NCBI GenBank assembly: GCA_904063045.1
Contig: CAJFCJ010000006.1
Coordinates: 5,038,408-5,102,407, forward strand
Length of the DNA: 64,000 bases
Source: Dimorphilus gyrociliatus
Lineage: Eukaryota; Animalia; Annelida
Reading direction: 5' to 3'
Shown here: piece after piece, positions 4,115-35,620 of the stretch
Position numbering within the stretch: position 1 is the first letter of the stretch
Layout of the letters: each line of letters starts with the position of its first letter
Notes under the pieces: generated by a model
The model's database searches: none
What the model was told of the DNA's origin: nothing
What the model saw: only the letters and a program-made list of their open reading frames with translations
Program-made: the position numbers and the translations under genes

Positions 4115-7100
4115 ATGAAAATGAAAGTTGAAAAAGGATTATTTCCGTTAATAATCTTTATTCCTCTCGTACTCTCTACAAATTTAAAACTAGGTGAGTA
4201 AAGACGAAAGGATTTATACATTGATAGTTTCTCTATCATATATCAAGAGAGGAAAAGAGGGTGTAATTTTCTTCTCTCTTTCTTCCTTGTAAGTAGGTAT
4301 ATCTTGTATAGATAATATTCTATTCTTCTATATACAAGCATATTAAAAGACAAGAATGGTTAACACCTTTTGAAATATCTTTAGCGGATTAAGTTATTTT
4401 AATTAAAAATAGATTCAAATCCTTTGATTAGAAGGTTTTTTCCTGTAATCACTCAACGTTATAGATATAATATCAAAGGCTTCCTTGTCCTATAGCTTTT
4501 CCTGTCGTAGTTTGATCCTTAGCCAATCTGGCCTGCGTAATTATAATAATTTGAATAATGTACACTTATCCATTTGCTTGCGTTGACTATAGTGTAAACA
4601 GTAGTACATACTCATTCATATACACACAAATATACAGTATATACTGTATATTTTATAAACGTTTACACCACACGAATGAACATATTGATTTGAATAAAGA
4701 AAAAGATAACTAAATTTTATATATGGTAAATGTAAAAGTATACAAAGTATGTGCATTTAAACATTCATTGAGCTATAGTAATTATATAAAAGTTATAAGC
4801 AATTTATCCGTTTTCATATATGAGTAATATTTAATCAATTTTTCTATATTAATTTTTATTCGTTAAGTAACTTCAAAGGAGTTAAATACATAATTAAGTA
4901 TTACTTACTACAGATATTAGTGGAGATACCGAAGAAAGGGAATTGTTAATAAGAAATATACTAAAAAATGTATCCGAATATACAAATACTAGCTGTTTGG
5001 ATGTTTCTTATAGAACTTTTGAAGATGCATTCCAGTTTTTGGAGACGGGATGTAGTTCGTTAAGAGATGGATCAGCAATATTCTTATCACATGCATATTC
5101 TTGCGCAAACCATGAAATATTCCTAAGCTTTGCAAAGTATTTGAATATTCCATTTATATCTTTACCCTCAAAATGTGATGAGATAGCCTGGACAAAGATT
5201 ACTTTCGGTTTAATAGATTATCTAAACAGCTCTGAGATTATTGTTATATACGATAAGAGTGCCGGTAACTATACATTTACATTAACAAAAATTATAGAGA
5301 GTTTACAATAAGACTTTAATAATCTCTTTCAAATTGATAGAGTCTCATTGGAAATTACAAGTATTCCTCTCTCAGGCTGCTCGAGAAAAGGTCTCTTTAT
5401 CATTATTGAGTATCAACGAAAAACTATCAAACATTGACGATATTCTAAGCAGTAGCTATATGGAACCGCAAATGGCAATTCCCTATATTCTTCTATGTAA
5501 TTTTAATTCAACGAAAATTCTGTTACAAAAGGTAATCGAGATATTATACAAATAATATATAAAGTTACGGCTATTCCATAAAGTGTAAACTCGAATATTA
5601 TTGATTTTTCATCAGATACGAATACCATAAATAACAAATTAATTTACTCAAACTAATACTTATATATTATATATAAAGAAATAGGAAAGCTTGTTGATTA
5701 CATCTCGATTAGAAGAAATATTACCTGATACTTAGGTTATAAATATATTTATTTAAGATAAATTTTCCTTGAAATTAGGTTCATCAAAAAAAAATGAGCA
5801 GATTGGAATATAAGTGGATTATTCACGGTGATGATATTACAATAGAATCCATAACTCCCCTGCTAAGAGATGAAATTAATGTTGCTGTATTAACTGTAAA
5901 TACAGGATTGTCAGATTTTTCACTAATTAAAGTAAATATTAAGTAGTTTATATTTGATAAGAAGGATTTTCTAAGAAGAAATTTTCACATTTAAGGCCTA
6001 CATCAACGCAACAATAGCTACATCTAATGAACTTTGCAGTATTTTACCGACAGTTTCAAAAATTGACTCAGACGAATGTGTATCACCTTTGACACTTGAT
6101 ACAAGACGCTTGATAAATGCAACACTACACAAGGTATGCATTTAGCATAGGATGCAACTATTTACCAATAGATATCTAATTTAAAGTTAATCATTAGAAT
6201 ATGGAAATCTTCAAGAACGATCTCTCTTTAAAATGGGTTATTCATAGTTCAGTTTCTCATTTGAACGGAAAGCCTAGTATGATTGAAACTGGTAATTATT
6301 CAAACGGTCAGTTGAATCTCTACAGAGATCATTTATATCCGAACGATCATTCTGGATTAAATGGGAGACGTTTTTTAGTTACCAGTCTGCCAGTAAGGAT
6401 ATATAAATGATATTTTTCGGTAAATGTTATACTCAGTCTTTTATTCTCTTTTTAGTATTCCTTTTTCCAAAAAAAAACTGTTATTGGTAATTTAACAATC
6501 TGGGAAGGCTTAACGTTTGACATTTTGAATCAATTGGCGCAAGATCTAAATTTTACCTACGATGTCATTGAGCCAGCTGATGGAAATTGGGGTATCGACA
6601 TTGGAAATGGATCTTGGAATGGTATGATGGGTCAAGTTATAAGAGGAGAAGTAGATTTTGCCTCGGCGTCATTCTCAATTACAGCTGCTCGTCAATTTGT
6701 AGGCGATTTTGCAGCTCCATATTTTCGAGATCAGTCAGTTATAATTATGAAATTACCTGAGGGAAATGATAAACTCCGATTATATTTAAAGCCATTCAGG
6801 CCAGAAGTATGGTAAGAATACATTGTCTTTTTCATATTAAAAGAAATCAACTATTTTCTCATTTTATTAGGCTTAGTTTAGTTTCGGCAGTCCTGATAAC
6901 CGGAGTTTTCTTTTGGCTAATATCAGCTTACAATCCTTACTATAAAGAACGCCATTCGAAGATAAAAAAAAAAGAATCCTTTTTCTACGGTCCCACTGCT
7001 CTGTTGTATGTTTATGGATATATTCTTCAACAAGGTAGCGACCATATGCCAAAATCTTCATCAGGAAGATTTCTAATAGGATGCTTTTGGTTTTTCAGGT

Positions 7101-8020
7101 AGTAAATAGCTACTATTTTATTTAATTAATTTTAATAATAGACGTCATTTGAATATTGCAGCTTGGTTATTGCCGCAACATATACAGGAAATTTAATTGC
7201 TTTTCTAGCCATCAGTACTGTTGATTTGCCATTTAATAGTCTTGAAGAGCTTGTTCAACAAGACGCTATGTCATACGGACCAGCTAGGGCTGTGGCTCTT
7301 GTAATGTTGTTTAGGGTAAATGTAACAGAGGAGTTAAATTAAATGTTTAATAATCCAAATCTTACGAATTTCAGGATTCAAAGCTATATCCATACACAGA
7401 GGTTGCAAAAACAATGACTGAAGTTAAAAATTACGAGATAGCAATGAAACAGGTTAGAACTGGAAAATTTGCCTTTATTGCTGAAAAATCCTACTATGCG
7501 GCTGTATCCGCTGATGATTGTGATTTGGTAATGGCTAGACAGGAATTTTATCCCACAGATTATGGGTGGTTTTTTCCTAAAGGGACGCCTTATATAAAAA
7601 AGTTTAATGATAGGTAATCAAAAAACATTCTCTCGATAGTATATTATTTATTACATCAGTATCTTGAAATAGTCTCTTATTAGATATGAATAGATCTTAA
7701 TTTTTGGTTTTAAATATTTATGCTCTAGGATAACAAAAATGAGAGAAGGTGGTCTGTTAAACAAGTGGATGAAGAATAGAATACCTAAAAATTTACAATG
7801 TAAGGGGCTAGGACCAGTAACGAAGGCTAAAGTGGCAACTCTGGAAGATTTTCAAGGAGTCTTCTACGTATTTTTAGGAGGAGTTGTTTTAGCATCATTG
7901 GTTCTTTCAATAGAAATATTAATAACTTTAAAGCAAAGAAGGTTTTTCAGCAAAAATTTTTTGAAAAGAAAAGAAAGAATATCTAACACGACAAACGGAA
8001 TTGAGCAGTGTAATAAGTGA
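4115..8020 (+). CDS. Ionotropic receptor (variant iGluR) with signal peptide and a divergent N-terminal domain, multi-exon
   Basis: Signal-peptide exon 4115-4193 splices in phase to 4914. S1 reads YDVIEPADGNWG..GSWNGMMGQV..SFSITAARQFVGDF. Pore reads GYILQQG; M3 reads ATYTGNLIAFL; S2 reads AFIAEKS..YGWFFPKG; M4 reads FQGVFYVFLGG. All junctions checked are GT-AG and keep frame. Confidence 0.9.
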
Positions 8021-22056: not shown

Positions 22057-25000
22057 ATGAGAAAGTTAATGTTTGTAAACTATTATAACTATCTTGTACT
22101 AATCTCTTCTTTATATTATAAACTTTTGTCTACGACAAGTGTTGATAATGAATTATCAATGTTACGTATTTACTCTTCAAATGGTACGAAAATACAAACT
22201 AAATTGAAAAATATTGATGGTGAATTATCTTATCTAACTGATAATAATTTAAATACTTGCTTAACGGCAACTGATTTAAATAATGCTTGGTTTAGTATAT
22301 TACTAAGCAAACTTTCACTAGTTAAATTAATTCGTATTGGTTTTCAAAGTTTAGGTAATAAAAAATTAGAGATTTAGTCTCCTTTCTATTTCTATTTGTT
22401 AATAATTTAATTAAAAGAATATTCATTAAGGTCATTATTTAAAAAGACATACTCTAAGAGTTGGTATTAGTAATAGTTTACCAAATTCGTATAAAGGAAT
22501 AATTGATGGTTTTCACGAATGCTTTCGTACGAAATATTTCACTCTAAATACAATTGATAAAGAAATAGAAAATCACTGTAAAACAAACTGGACAATTGGT
22601 CATCAAGTTGTTATTATATCATCTGACAAATTATTCAGATTATGCGAAATTTCAATTATAGGAAATGTATTAAATGAACAAGTAAAAATTCATAATCATT
22701 CTTCACTGTTTGCTAAAAGTATTCTATTTATAATATAGTTTTTTTTTTTAAAAAAATAATATTTCTATTTTTTTCTTTCTCCTCATAAGATTTTAATGGA
22801 AGCTATTCAATTTCTTTTATAAATATTCGTAATTCGACTACAAAATATAGAAGGCAACAAGATAATTTAACAACAAATAAATCGACCAATTATTATAAAG
22901 AATATAAGCCGGCAGCAAATGAAAATAATCTGTATAAAGATAAGTCAAAATCTATGAAAAAACATAGATCTGAACAGAGAGAAAAATATCTTAAAAAACA
23001 ATTTAAAGAAGATTTCATTCAATTTCCAACAGCAAAAATATTTAAGACAAAGAAAAAGTATATTATGAAAAATAAACTTCAAGATATATTTGCTTTTAAC
23101 AATCAATCTAACATCTCTATGACAACGATAATGTATATTAAACCCACAACAATTGTTAAAACGACAAATACAACTGCTACTTTGACTATAAATGACACTA
23201 CAACGATTAAACCATTATCCTATGTATTGGAAAATGTTGTAAATAGGTATAATTGGTCCTTACTTTCCAATTTTTATAGAATAAACTTACAAGAGTATAA
23301 TAAATTTAAAAAGAAAAAAAGAACGCCAAAGAGACATAGAATGAATTTAGCTTTACATAAAAGAGGCAGTCAAATAAATACCATAAAAGATTATAGACTT
23401 AGCGTTGACGGATTCAAGAATACCTGTTCACTTATACAAACTATAGTACCCTATATCGAACCCTGGTGGTCAATAGATTTACTAATAGATTATAATATTG
23501 ATAGAGTATCTGTTATCTTCAATAAAGAGTACATGGGTGAAAAATCAGCTTATAATATTAAAATAGGATCATTAAATATTCTGCCAAGATCCCTAAACAA
23601 ACTAAAATTTCTAACAGTTTGCCTTGAAAATAAGTTTCGTCTAATAGAGTCAAATGTTATTTTTATATGTAGAAGAAACTTTAATGCAAGATTCTTAGGA
23701 TTAACAATAAATTCGTTAATTTTAAGTATTTGCGAAGTGGAAATTTATAAAACAATAAGAAATAATAATAATAATAATCTGGAAACAATTCAGAGAAATA
23801 ATGAAAGTATGTTAGAGTATATTAATACATTATACGAACGATCTAGAAAATATATGCAACTTTTTCAATTTTCAAACAATACTATAGCAAACTATGTTCA
23901 TCAATCTTTTATTGAACCAAACAGGATTAGACAAAATAAGGAATTAAATGAAAAAGGTATTGAATAAATTGATATTTCAAAACATTTATAATCCGTCATT
24001 TATAGATGCTGATAAACTAAGTAATACTATAACTAATAATTCTATTGAATTTGGGAAAAGTACTCCTAAGACTAATCGAAAAACTTTAATTGTTTTAAAT
24101 GCTACAACTCCATTTCCGAAATTATCCTCTCCTTCCAATTTAAATATTCAAAGGTTATTACTAAACGACGATGGTAATGATGTATTTACTCTTGAATTAA
24201 AGAAAAATAGAAATAAAAGATATATAAACAATAACTATCGTAAACAAATTGTCTATGATAAGACATTTGAAAGAAACTCGAAATCGTTCATAGTAGATGT
24301 ATTCGATAATGTTCAAAGTGCTTATTCAATTAATAGAGATAATGACGATATGGGTAAGTTTTATAATGATTTACTTTAGTCTAGTAGTGTTAATAGTCTG
24401 ATTCTACTCTATTTAGGACCAGAAAAGGCTCTAGATGGAAATTTGATGACTTGTTTGAAAACAAAAACTGTTAATGATCCAAAACAATTAAGTGTTTATT
24501 ATCCTTGGTGGTCAGTGGATACGGAGAATATTGATACAGCTCTTTCTTGGGCGAGAATTATGTCAGATTCCTTTGATTATGAGCATCTCGTAATTGGAAT
24601 GTCTAAGAGGTTACCGGGAAATGATTGGCCTAACACTGGTAGTTTAGATTTCAAGTAAGAGAGGGGAGAGATGTTTATCTTCCCTGTAGGAGAGCTATTC
24701 TCGACCTATTTCATGATTGTTAAAAAATGTTTTATAACAGACCGTGCTATGACTATGTCAGTCGAAATAAGACAAAACAAGTTGATCTTACTTGCGAACA
24801 GGTGTCAAAAGGACAATATTTACTTCTTTACGCTCCATATAGGCCTTTCTTAAAAATTTGTGAAATTTTAGCCTACACAAACTCAGCATCTCTGCAAGGT
24901 AACAAAACATAATTCTGTCTACATAAAACAGTAAAAAAGAACCGCTGTAAATTAAAGATATAGCTAAAAGGGAGTCTAAACAGCCTAGAAAAAGTTTACA

Positions 25001-29399: not shown

Positions 29400-29402
<3 letters not shown>

Positions 29403-29432
<30 letters not shown>
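29403..29432. repeat. (AG)15 microsatellite
   Basis: Perfect run just downstream of the PINCH stop codon. Confidence 0.95.
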
Positions 29433-29438
<6 letters not shown>

Positions 29439-29540
29439 TAAATTTTGTAATTTTATTTGTTTTCAAGCTAAAAACTTTGAAAATAAAAGAATGTTTTCAA
29501 AGGCTAAAGATTTGTGACAAAGAAATAAAGATAAAACTTC

Positions 29541-32231
29541 CTATTTTTCTTCAATTTTCATACTCTCGAAGGCGTTTCTTAATCGTTTCCTCAATTCATT
29601 AGGTAGATTATTAAAACATCCTTTACAGACTGGTTTCATATCAAATTCATAAAATTTACTCCTGTTGTATAAAGAAATTAAATCTTATTGACTTCTTTGT
29701 TAATTTAAATATGCAAACTTACTTAAGACCCATGGCTTTTTCGCATATTGAACAAGTAAAGTGTTCAACGCAGTAGTTTTTATTTAAAGCAGTAAAAACT
29801 GTAAAAAGTTGAAGAGAGAGATAATTAAAACATTTTTAAAATAGTTCTACTTCATACCTTCATTTGCGTTAATTACTTGATTACAATGAAAGCAAATGTT
29901 GCCAAATAATTGATGAAAATGTAATTCACAATAAGCTAGACCTTTTTTCTCAAAATACGGATGACCAAGAAAAGGTTTTTCGCATTTGGCGCATGCAAAA
30001 TGCTATAAAACATAAAAAAAACAAAAAAAGTTGATTTATGCCTAAAGAGAATGATATTGATAAAAAGAATAATATAAATAATTTCACCTCTATATGCCAA
30101 GTTTTACCTAATGCAAAAACGACTCTTTCTTCTATCGGTCGCCTTTAAATAACAAAGAGAGTGAATGGAAAAAGCATTCTTAGGTTATAAAAGGAAATAA
30201 TAAGGATTGAATAAATCTCCTACCGGCAAGCGCCACAAATAGAAACGCCCATTTTATCAAAGCAACGTAAACAAAATAATTCACCGTCCTTTTCACGAGC
30301 ATTAGAGCTTAATTCTTCACTATAAACAGTCTAGAATAATATTTGTTCAGTATATTTAATTATACTATGTACCTGCAATTAAAGCAACTAAAATGATAAC
30401 AATGGTAGGATTCCCCTTTATATTTAATATGTCCTTCGTCAATAACCGAACTAGTTTAATAAATAAAATATATTAATTATTCAATTAGAGTCAATTATCT
30501 ATTAGCTAACTTGCATCTACTGCAGATATATCTTCCTAACATTTCATCTTTTTCCTTAGCTTGGCATTTGGCGCACAAAGCCCTTAGATTATTAAAAATT
30601 AAATATTATTTCTTATCAAACTTATCTTAATAAGATATTAATTTTATATATTTTTGACTTACTTTCCATTAAACCACTTAAAAGAGTCGGTTAAATCTGC
30701 TGTACATTTTTCACACTTAAAGCAAGCTGGATGCCATGTTTTGCCGATTGCTCTAACCATACGTCCAGTTATAAAACTCTCTGTAATAAATCGTAACAAA
30801 GAAACATATATACTTTATATATATATATATATATGTTATTATTATTATAAACAACTATTACTTACTGCAACTATCGCATGTTGGTGCGAATAAAAAATTG
30901 AAATCATCTACACAATACTTTCTTCCTTCAAATTCATAGAATTCATTACTTTGCAATTGTTGGAAACAATGGGCACAGCTGTTTTTTTTGATATTTTGGT
31001 TGTTTTTTAAGAAGAGGAATAAAAAAAATATACAATTAGTAACAATGATTTTTGATTTCTCCGAAAGAGTAAGATACATATAGAAGGATAGAAAATGTAG
31101 GATTTATAAATAGATAGATAGATAGATAGATAGATTGAGAAAAATATAAGCCAGGTGCAAAATAAAATAAGGGATAAGGCTAAGAGATAAGGTAAAAATA
31201 CTGGAGTAGTTAAGTGTGTTTAATTATGTTAATTATTAATTGGAATAATTAATAAAAGAGAAATAAATGATTAAGGTACAAAAATTAAGGATAGGAATCG
31301 AACTCCGTAAGTGTTAATTGGAATATTTATAGTGTTTTAATAATTATATAACGGAGAACTCACACAAAACATCTAGTATGCCAAACTCGGCCATTGTAAT
31401 TAGCCAGTGCATCATCCTTTGTGGTTGGTTCTTGACAATGATTGCAATAGATGTCCGAATCGAGAAAAGAAGCTGGGGCATTCTGATGCGCGCTAAATAT
31501 TCATAGGCACATGCATATATATACAGTATATATCTTTATGTATATACACATATATATATATAAATTAATTTTAATAGACTTCAAGATAAATGATTACGTA
31601 ATTCTCATTAATTCAATAACATTATATATATATATATAAAAGAATAAAGCGGAGAAGAGAAGAAAATAAGGTTTTTTTCTGTTTTTAGTATAAAAATAAA
31701 AGAAAAGGAAAAAAAAACCACAGTAACTTTCTAAGATGATGAACTTACACAAAACATTCCTGGTGCCAAAGATATCCTTCCGCTTTTACAATCTCTTCCG
31801 CTTCGGTGAATGGATCTTTACATTTTACGCAGAATCTATCCATCAGATTTTCTCTGTTTTTCATATAAAAGCGTGTGATGAATTAAGCTTTTCTATAATT
31901 AGTATAATTCGTAGCATACGCTATTAATTAATGATAAGAATATAGAATGTTCTATATTAAAGCTAACTTAGGTAAATTGTGAATAAATAAGCTTAAAATG
32001 ATAAAAGATTAAGGAGAGTAGAGAATGAGAGTTTTCCAAGATAGAAACGGAAGCAGAGAGTATAATGTAATACATAGGAATTCAATGATGTATTGCTCAA
32101 TTATTAGTTTACCTCTTTCGCCGCCTATATAAATCACTAGTATTATCCTGGTCCAAATTTTGCAAGGCAAACCGATGGCGGGCGGGTTGCTGCAAACTAC
32201 GCAGACCGCGATTTGGGCCTCTATCCTGCAT
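29541..32231 (-). CDS. LIMS1: PINCH (LIM and senescent cell antigen-like, five LIM domains)
   Basis: [91 protein letters not shown], and [13 protein letters not shown]...LP.ELRKRL. First coding exon 32231-32113 (MQDR..ALQNL..DLYRRRK). Confidence 0.96.
31110..31135. repeat. (TAGA)n tetranucleotide repeat in a PINCH intron
   Basis: Tandem TAGA units. Confidence 0.85.
31364..31492 (-). other. PINCH alternative exon B (second copy of the first zinc finger of LIM1)
   Basis: 129 nt, phase 2-2, TAG acceptor and GTGAGT donor. Encodes [43 protein letters not shown]. Confidence 0.85.
31749..31853 (-). other. PINCH alternative exon A (first zinc finger of LIM1)
   Basis: 105 nt, phase 2-2, CAG acceptor and GTAAGT donor. 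Encodes [35 protein letters not shown]. Confidence 0.9.
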
Positions 32232-34078
32232 ATAGTATTTAGTACACGCCTTTTCGTATAAACTAGACAAAAATTTTCCACCACTGTATCCTGTGTCACG
32301 GTCGGTTTTTACACAATCGCTCTTTTTTATTATCTAAATTGCTTATTCTGTATGTATCGATAGCTGGCCTGCAGCATATCAATTAAATTGGCTAGAAAAA
32401 GCCATTTTTTGTACTTTGCTCCATTATATCACATGTCTTAAAAATCATTGTTCAGTTTGTTGGCTGACTTTAAACATAAAGGAGAAAATGATCAGCCTTT
32501 ATTTTTTAAACATTCTTCAATGGCCTATCTATTAAGCTTACGAATTTGATCATCTACTACATCGTAAGGCCAACTCGTAGTAAACTCTTGGGTTTTTTTA
32601 TCAATTGAACACTCGAATATCGTTGATCGATGAATGAATTAACAGAATATATATTTTACTTACCTAATTTGATAAATCCACCGTTTGTAAGGGATTTAAC
32701 AGCGTGATTCGGGTGGAAAATACTTTCTAATTAGGATTTACTCGGACGTCCATACAGTGAAAGCTGTGCAATGACTAGAAGCGCCATCTATTTTATTATA
32801 TAATCCCCACTGTTTGTATAACAAGATACAGTGAAAAAAGGGTTATACAATTTTACAAAATGTAAATAAAGTAAGTTTATAGAAGATTACAAAGATCTTT
32901 TTACTGCTTCATATAGAATAAATATTGTATAATAATTACATTTTTACTCTCGCTTGGGGCGCTTATAGCACATTTTTATTAAGGCTATCTTTGGCTCATT
33001 CAGCGAATTGCATCTTTATAAATATAAAAACCGCCAAAAATTCTTCTTTAAATAGTTTAATTAATAATTATTCATTATATACTTATAGTTTAAATAGACT
33101 AGAAACAAATCCATAAATAAATAATCTTTTTATTGATAGAAAAAGGCCATCTTTTAAAAACATAACATAACCGAGAAAGTAAATCAATCTCTTATTTTTT
33201 ATATTTTCTTAAGGTTTTTATCATACTTTTACGTTTTTTTATAAGAAATTGCCAATAAACTTTATCTTATTATAGGAGAAGGAATACCTTACATATTAAT
33301 TTATTATAAAAATGTCCTATTAATATCGTTAAGATAAACTATATGAGCAGTTAAATTTTGATACTGATTGTATCCTATTTTCGTTCGCTACAATAAATTC
33401 GTATATAGGCGTTTAAAAAGTTAACAATATGACTTTTTCAAGTACTTCTTTAGCCTAACATAGATAATTTACTGATTACTACTCTTAACCTGGATTATTA
33501 CTATCTTGTAAATTACTTTTTAAGCTATAACTACTGGATTAATCCTTATCTATATTTTCCTATGTATCATATTATCTTAAGAAATAAAACGAATATTCGT
33601 TAACGAATTACCTTTTTAATTAACATATATCACAATATTTTGAAATATTTATAAACTAAAAAGAATAACTAATTTTCTATTTAGGTCGGTATAGCCAAAG
33701 AAAAAGAAACAAGAATTTAGCAAGTCCCATAGGCGATTGTTTACTTTTAAACGCCCACATAAATCATGCTTACAGAGCTTTTAATTGGTCTTCTGTTTTG
33801 TATCAAATGTTAAAAAAATAGAATTTACCTAGATTGTTTTATAAATTAACCTTCCATTTATTTTATTTACATGTACTACTAGAATACTTTTATAAATTTC
33901 CTGGTAAGCCTAATCAATAATATCTATCTTAAGCACCACCCCTTTACCTCCCTTATTTTTTCTCTGTCATTAGAAAGATAGCAAAGCGCCTTTTCAAAGG
34001 CAATAAATAATAATGAATATTGTAATAGATAAATTAATTGGTATAATTCAATATATGGATGGGAAAATTCTGTTTGAT

Positions 34079-35159: not shown

Positions 35160-35620
35160 ATACTGTGTATACAGATAGGACTTTAGAAAATTGTCCCTGG
35201 GCGTTTCCCTAAGCCAAAAAAATAGCCTAGAAGACCTAACAAAGTAGATAAGTCACACAAATTTCGTGGCGATCATCTATCTATGTATTTCTGATTTTTA
35301 ACTCTCAACTCACCTTTTTTCGGCTCTGCTAAGACTAGAAATATAGCTTGAACATAAATTAGTTTCATCTTGAGGTTACATTGAGTTCAAACTCAATAAT
35401 CCTCTGCGATAAAAACCTATTATTCTACTGGTGAATGTGGAGGCCTACATCGATTTTTTTTGCATACATTATAAAAACTGTCATATCAATATTTCTACCC
35501 TCAGAGTTCTTGAATACTACGACTTAAACAAATTCTATATTCTCAATTCTCAGCCTATTTTACAATACGTCCCACGCATTTTAATCGAAATATTAATCAA
35601 TTCATGGGGTTCTTTATTCT
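35160..35620 (-). mobile_element. Decayed Tc1/mariner DDE C-terminal relic
   Basis: Minus-strand frame reads P*ID*YFD*NAWDVL*NRLR, resembling SPDLNPIEN.W..LK..L; a TA/CAG-like boundary lies near 35160. Heavily degraded. Confidence 0.4.

Follow-up and report, generated by a model that had tools for sequence, protein, structure and literature searches.

Does a gene that carries two exons for the same zinc finger use one in place of the other, or does it put both into the same transcript? This question is raised by a 64,000-nucleotide (nt) stretch of the genome of the annelid Dimorphilus gyrociliatus (contig CAJFCJ010000006.1, positions 5,038,408 to 5,102,407, hereafter the window). One of the genes in the window is PINCH (LIMS), which lies on the minus strand in what is an AT-rich, compact animal genome. 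PINCH is a cell-adhesion scaffold protein, and its first LIM domain (LIM1), which binds the ankyrin domain of ILK, is the handle that holds ILK in the integrin adhesion complex. In Dimorphilus, two exons, A and B, each encode a first finger for LIM1. We found that exon B is a frame-preserving cassette exon that is spliced together with exon A and is not swapped for it.

The identity of the gene follows from its similarity to known PINCH along its whole length. In tblastn comparisons of the PINCH proteins of Lingula and Ostrea with positions 29400-32800, from finger A onward the match was collinear, as far as residue 369 of the 373 in Lingula PINCH, and exon C was 60-62% identical to both proteins. 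A 48-residue exon of the gene (exon I), when used as a query, retrieves PINCH loci. Furthermore, the gene encodes five tandem LIM domains and a C-terminal tail that are collinear with known PINCH, which Koch et al. (2012, PMC3305314), in surveying the LIM superclass, described as five tandem LIM domains. The exons, and the splice junctions that bear on exons A and B, are listed in Table 1.

Table 1. Exons of the PINCH gene of Dimorphilus and the splice junctions seen around exons A and B. Positions are those of the window; within a sequence, a slash marks the border between exon and intron, and for junctions the two joined positions are given. X1-X4 are RNA runs.
Feature	Position	Length	Strand	Details
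Exon U0 (alternative non-coding 5' exon)	32664..32769	at least 106 nt seen	minus	3' end 32664, donor gtaagt
Exon U (alternative coding 5' exon)	32113..32231		minus	ATG at 32231; phase-2 donor AAAGAG/gtaaac
Exon A	31749..31853	105 nt	minus	phase 2/2; acceptor aaaaacag/A, donor TTTTGT/gtaagt; A-type CCHC finger, internal ATG
Exon B (cassette)	31364..31492	129 nt	minus	phase 2/2; acceptor atatttag/C, donor TTTTGT/gtgagt
Exon C (common to both forms)	30866..30978		minus	second finger of LIM1 (C-A-H-C-F-Q-Q ... F-E-G-R-K-Y-C) and start of LIM2
Eight downstream constitutive exons	29541..30780		minus	LIM2-LIM5 and C-terminal tail; introns 53-85 nt; stop TAG 29543-29541
Junction U-A	32113/31853			coding 5' exon used; run X3
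Junction A-B	31749/31492			A and B together; runs X4, X3
Junction B-C	31364/30978			B included; runs X4, X1, and X3 by a loose end
Junction A-C	31749/30978			exon B skipped; runs X4, X2

A preliminary description of this DNA had placed a PINCH gene here with exons U, A, B, and C, and the sequence of the minus strand and its translations bear out their positions, phases, and finger patterns. Exon A and exon B each encode C-x2-C-x18-H-x2-C-F, and the V that follows is completed by the next exon. The product of exon B begins with a 15-residue linker and continues with a B-type CCHC finger with the signature N-Y-N-G-x-V-W-H. Both exons match positions 1-27 of the 58 positions of the Pfam LIM model (25.4 bits for exon A and 22.8 bits for exon B). 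Among structures in the PDB, the best matches of exon A are LIM1 of PINCH1/2 (25-26 bits), and the best match of exon B by sequence is FHL1 (29.8 bits), with only 13-16 bits for PINCH. The donors of the two exons are nearly identical (TGTTTTGT followed by gt[a/g]agttc). The preliminary description had also called the two exons strongly divergent, and just 10 of 28 finger residues are identical between them. By sequence comparison, exon B is a diverged tandem duplicate of exon A, the first-finger exon of LIM1, as had been proposed. Two further remarks of the description were right: there is an ATG within exon A, and the reading frame is kept when both exons are included.

The adjacency, homology, and identical phase (2/2) of exons A and B are as in mutually exclusive pairs. 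They are the only uninterrupted open reading frame segments for a CCHC first finger between 29400 and 33000, and a search of the introns in this range found no third finger-like reading frame. The introns on either side of exon B have a G+C content of 21-27%, and exon B itself has 44%. Intron length also differs within the gene: eight introns measure 53-85 nt, and the three that surround exons A and B measure 256-385 nt. There are (TA)n and (TATC)n runs in the introns around A and B (30979-32112), for example near 31120-31140 and 31540-31640.

To describe the splicing, we placed the spliced contigs from four public RNA runs (X1-X4, from four studies) on positions 29400-32400. The identity to the window is at least 99% for run X4 and 95-99% for the runs that include 5' exons (X2 and X3). 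A spliced contig of 908 nt from X4 spans the downstream exons, and all of its junctions read CT..AC on the plus strand. Because of this contig, and because of the identity of at least 99%, we consider X4 to contain RNA of Dimorphilus. All of the junctions that we observed are canonical (GT..AG on the gene strand).

The three junctions that are expected of a cassette exon, A-B, B-C, and A-C, were all found in one sample (X4), and the length of exon B is a multiple of three. In X3, one record (record 6) is a single contig of 179 nt that contains 21 nt of exon C, exon B, and then 29 nt of exon A. The 21 nt are loose letters at the 3' end of exon B; their translation is C-A-H-C-F-R, and 18 of the 21 agree with exon C, so this contig spans C-B-A. 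We also looked for a junction from U or U0 to B in the contigs of the four runs and found none. The contig with exon B continues for 29 nt into exon A without a branch, which implies that a U-B form, if there is one, is rare. Exon A is present in every transcript form that we saw. It occurs alone between its flanking exons in X4 and X2, and exon B without exon A was seen neither in the contigs nor in the proteins of other species. Because the A-C, A-B, and B-C junctions were seen and no upstream-to-B junction was, we classified exon B as a cassette and not as an alternative to exon A.

In X4, the depths of the junction contigs were 327 (A-B), 255 (B-C), and 177 (A-C), and the constitutive downstream exons had a depth of 569. 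These depths are rough, and they suggest that exon B is included in somewhat more than half of the X4 transcripts (roughly 60% of the junction depth). In the related runs, exon B has 0 changes in 89 nt (X1) and 3 changes in 129 nt (X3), which is no more than the neighboring exons have.

The junctions thus give two in-frame mRNA forms, A-C and A-B-C. If exon B is skipped, then A joins C, and LIM1 is the canonical A+C domain of a five-LIM PINCH. A LIM domain needs two fingers that are spaced by two residues. Because of this spacing, if exon B is included, then LIM1 should be B+C, as B is the finger that adjoins C. Finger A would then be left as an extra N-terminal half-LIM of the CCHC type, separately folded, on a flexible linker of 9-15 residues. 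Overall, we think it likely that exon B is an ancient frame-preserving cassette, with A-C giving the five-LIM PINCH and A-B-C giving a “five-and-a-half LIM” PINCH.

A structural model of a natural A+B isoform, from Patella, fits this arrangement. We used AlphaFold2 with an alignment of 32 sequences, and the mean predicted local distance difference test (pLDDT) score was 85.9. Finger A scored 76-86 and B+C scored 81-91, with 62 for the linker between them, which fits a confidently folded finger A, a weak linker, and B+C as a normal LIM domain. Inclusion of exon B might also exchange half of the surface of the ILK-binding domain and add a spare finger, and it could perhaps tune the assembly of the ILK-PINCH-parvin complex or its choice of partners. 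We take human Q40, whose mutation abolishes ILK binding, to lie in the second finger, which is common to both forms.

The two fingers of Dimorphilus have not diverged in the same way. Finger A has K-A-E where 158 PINCH fingers have N (98%), S (95%), and N (73%), and finger B keeps N-Y-N-G where finger A lost this N-S-N loop (positions 31754-31831 for finger A and 31369-31446 for finger B). This pattern suggests that, in the Dimorphilus lineage, constraint on finger A was relaxed or function moved to finger B, and it is a hint that much of the canonical role of PINCH in this animal may rest with B+C. A stronger version would be that the form with B is the main working PINCH and that finger A is decaying to an N-terminal appendage, so that we are looking at a shift of roles instead of a regulated switch. 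The greater depth of the B-containing junction contigs in X4, as compared to the skipping contig, would fit with this, as would the loss of the loop. However, finger A keeps its four zinc ligands and the A-type residues F8, E12, I14, and V15, and it matches LIM1 of human PINCH better than finger B does (26 versus 13-16 bits). Also, the skipped form is well represented, and contig depths are poor measures. We therefore view such a shift of roles as rather unlikely.

Among other animals, a search with exon I gave an arthropod-like PINCH transcript contig (L001) and one weaker locus, and no annelids. With the unchanged open reading frame of L001 as the query, we obtained 120 PINCH proteins, and we scanned their N-termini for first fingers. 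Nearly all of these proteins carry one first finger. Three of them have two first fingers in tandem (A, linker, B, and then the second finger): isoform X1 from Lingula anatina (XP_013382896.1), isoform X2 from Patella vulgata (XP_050389046.1), and isoform X3 from Haliotis rufescens (XP_046381595.1). In a search that was limited to the two-finger region of Patella, these three scored 188-270 bits, and all others scored at most 137 bits. Cluster members add A+B isoforms in Gigantopelta (isoform X1, XP_041355158.1) and in two more species of Haliotis, for three Haliotis in all.

Some of these species also have isoforms that look like the skipped form. In Patella (X2, 379 residues, versus X8, 342 residues) and in Lingula (X1, 373 residues, versus X3, 333 residues), a partner isoform has the same N-terminus and is missing only B, and A-only isoforms also exist in Gigantopelta. 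Among about 190 PINCH proteins, there was no B-only isoform. The PINCH proteins that we examined from arthropods, nematodes, vertebrates, echinoderms, a priapulid, and sponges all have a single first finger.

In two genomes, we found the exon itself. In Lingula anatina (locus L003), the A-type exon ends with TGCTTTGT/gtaagt, and a separate B exon of 126 nt (23195-23320, phase 2/2) lies between A and C. Ostrea edulis (L006) has an intact B exon of 120 nt (about 35441-35560, phase 2/2), again between A and C; it ends with N-F-N-G-R-V-W-H-T-T-C-F-V and is skipped by the isoform that we fetched. Exon B of Dimorphilus has the same phase and the same location, between the A exon and the second-finger exon. 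In contrast, the B exon is absent from the A-C introns of the leech Helobdella (L004, 136 nt), which is the only other annelid locus that we examined, and of the sea slug Elysia (L007, 1.9 kilobases), Priapulus (L005, about 280 nt), and the sea cucumber Apostichopus (L008, 266 nt).

Searches with exon B alone were less informative. Using phmmer against 1.84 billion representative sequences, we found no significant true relative of exon B, which is a weak negative because clustering at 50% identity hides isoforms. There were three hits, none with a LIM domain in Pfam; one was a repeat protein, and the strongest hit summed 17 short stretches. A word search with exon B among proteins of 23-73 residues returned nothing.

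In a maximum-likelihood tree of 23 fingers (28 alignment columns), the five B fingers, including the one from Dimorphilus, were on one side of a branch with support of 97/98. The Dimorphilus A branch is equally long and stays among the A fingers. All of the B fingers have N-[YF]-N-G-x-V-W-H and all four zinc ligands. Dimorphilus B has the B-type states Y17 (this position is S in 95% of 158 A fingers) and V21, has R20 as in Ostrea, and does not have F8. Also, the linkers of Dimorphilus, Patella, and Ostrea share a small H...A-P...S pattern. Exon B most likely arose once, before the split of annelids, molluscs, and brachiopods, and was later lost in several lineages. (An unnamed arthropod-like protein from JGI, P0023, is a single-finger PINCH that has Y17 in an A-type finger, I-V-N-Y-N-G-E-L-W-H, so Y17 alone is no proof of a B-type finger.)

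Several points weigh against an ancient cassette that is spliced as we describe. The splicing evidence consists of contigs after assembly instead of the raw reads; assembly could have dropped a rare junction such as U-B, and the depths are rough. The 5' exons U and U0 come from related strains or species (X2 and X3) and were not seen in X4, and both PINCH isoforms are known from RNA alone. The tree has just 28 columns and Dimorphilus B is on a long branch in it, which makes it moderate evidence. Finally, Dimorphilus B is identical to other B fingers at 12-14 of 28 positions, as compared to a mean of 11.8 and a maximum of 13 for A fingers.

Given these points, exon B might instead be a recent duplicate that is specific to this lineage, or functionless splicing noise, and its likeness to the B exons of molluscs and a brachiopod would be due to convergence. 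Any tandem copy of exon A would automatically share its position and phase, and the nearly equal identity of Dimorphilus B to B and A fingers, the leech locus without a B exon, and the phmmer result would all fit with a recent copy. Still, we consider this very unlikely. The B group has strong support with Dimorphilus in it, and the equally long branch of Dimorphilus A lies outside; the B-type states and the linker pattern are shared; and A and B have so few residues in common that the duplication is taken to be old. As for noise, exon B accounts for most of the junction depth in X4, and it does not change faster than the neighboring exons in the related runs.

The preliminary description had proposed mutually exclusive splicing, in which each mRNA has either A or B and there are two clean variants of LIM1, and although A and B do form an adjacent, homologous pair in the same phase, with each able to splice in frame to U and C, this is extremely unlikely because the A-B junction occurs in two runs (including X4), one contig spans all of C-B-A, neither U nor U0 was seen joined to B and the unbranched contig means that a U-B form must be rare, and RefSeq has A+B isoforms in four other genera and no B-only isoform. 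The form that we found, with A and B together, had been mentioned in passing. Other parts of the description hold up: splicing does yield two versions of LIM1 (from the A-C and A-B-C mRNAs), and exon B is both transcribed and conserved, so neither of the two findings that the description had named as refuting it applies. Of the junctions that it listed, U-A, A-B, A-C, and B-C were found in the assembled contigs and U-B was not, and the exon is present in related animals (in the genomes of Lingula and Ostrea and in RefSeq isoforms from four lophotrochozoan genera).

How does this gene compare with known PINCH genes? The LIMS1 isoforms of Lingula, Patella, Haliotis, and Gigantopelta have the same order as in Dimorphilus (A finger, short linker, B finger with N-Y-N-G-x-V-W-H, second finger), although these A+B forms are automatic gene models. 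Lingula also shares the position and phase of the B exon, and the A-only partner isoforms in Lingula, Patella, and Gigantopelta follow the same cassette logic. Dimorphilus differs in having a longer linker (15 residues versus 9-12) and in that both of its fingers are far more diverged. Human PINCH1/2 (LIMS1/2), Steamer duck from Drosophila, and UNC-97 from C. elegans are collinear with the form that skips B. There is also an analogy to the FHL proteins, which have a single orphan zinc finger on the N-terminal side of full LIM domains. FHL is another family, however; the Dimorphilus gene is collinear with PINCH and not with FHL, and the half-LIM of FHL is constitutive instead of being controlled by splicing. 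The FHL half-LIM is the second-finger half of a LIM domain, whereas the orphan in Dimorphilus would be the first-finger (CCHC) half.

We found no description in the literature of an extra finger in PINCH. The form without B is ordinary PINCH and is known; what is new is a conserved, clade-restricted cassette exon that is predicted to give a five-and-a-half-LIM PINCH in which the first finger of LIM1 is exchanged. The textbook PINCH is a fixed five-LIM protein, yet an annelid, molluscs, and a brachiopod keep an optional exon that would change LIM1. This amounts to a natural experiment on the parts of LIM1 that are important for binding ILK. It is also a clean case of a duplicated exon that became a cassette and not a mutually exclusive exon, and exon B can serve as a clade marker whose losses (in the leech and the sea slug) are traceable.

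More tentatively, inclusion of exon B might act as a splice switch with an age of more than 500 million years. The switch would redefine LIM1, the domain that binds ILK, as B+C in place of A+C, and it would release finger A to serve as a new module for docking. In that case, a single gene would supply lophotrochozoans with two ILK-PINCH-parvin complexes of different function. Vertebrates have two genes, PINCH1 and PINCH2, to which such an arrangement may be likened. We think that this is possible but that the odds are against it.

Two alternative 5' exons lie upstream of exon A. A contig of X2 continues from exon A into 106 nt of upstream sequence, and letters of this sequence map to 32666-32695 with 3 mismatches (0 such matches are expected by chance). 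The 3' border of this exon (U0) reads ...aaattag/gtaagt. Stops close the reading frame from U0 into exon A, so translation of U0 transcripts would begin at the internal ATG of exon A. This would give a short N-terminus, like that of most PINCH proteins.

Exon U encodes a conserved N-terminal motif, LQxL...S-D-L-Y-R-R-R, which matches the N-terminal extensions of PINCH from Ostrea, Mytilus, Elysia, Babylonia, Priapulus, amphioxus, and a bird. The G+C content is 50% in exon U versus 27% in the next intron. Since other animals have a conserved alternative N-terminal exon in PINCH that matches exon U, exon U is a real coding exon. An alternative N-terminal exon with L-[YF]-x-R-R-R is common to the PINCH isoforms of Dimorphilus, vertebrates, and molluscs, and this motif is conserved across bilaterians. 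In X3, the contig that covers exon U extends upstream beyond 32400 by about another 290 nt without being spliced. Exon U may therefore be transcribed by read-through from the promoter of U0 and not have one of its own.

We noticed a few other features of these PINCH loci. The 3' untranslated region of the Dimorphilus gene contains a (CT)n run at about 29400-29440. In Priapulus caudatus (L005), a second, degraded, partial copy of the gene (finger A, the second finger, and the start of LIM2, at 5640-7190) lies a few kilobases downstream of the intact exons; either part of the gene was duplicated in tandem or the assembly is at fault. The arthropod-like transcript that we used as a query (L001, metagenome contig Ga0063136_1053630) encodes an N-terminal extension of about 190 residues that is rich in S, P, and D, and it retains one intron of 46 nt, which matches in position the intron that follows exon I in Dimorphilus.

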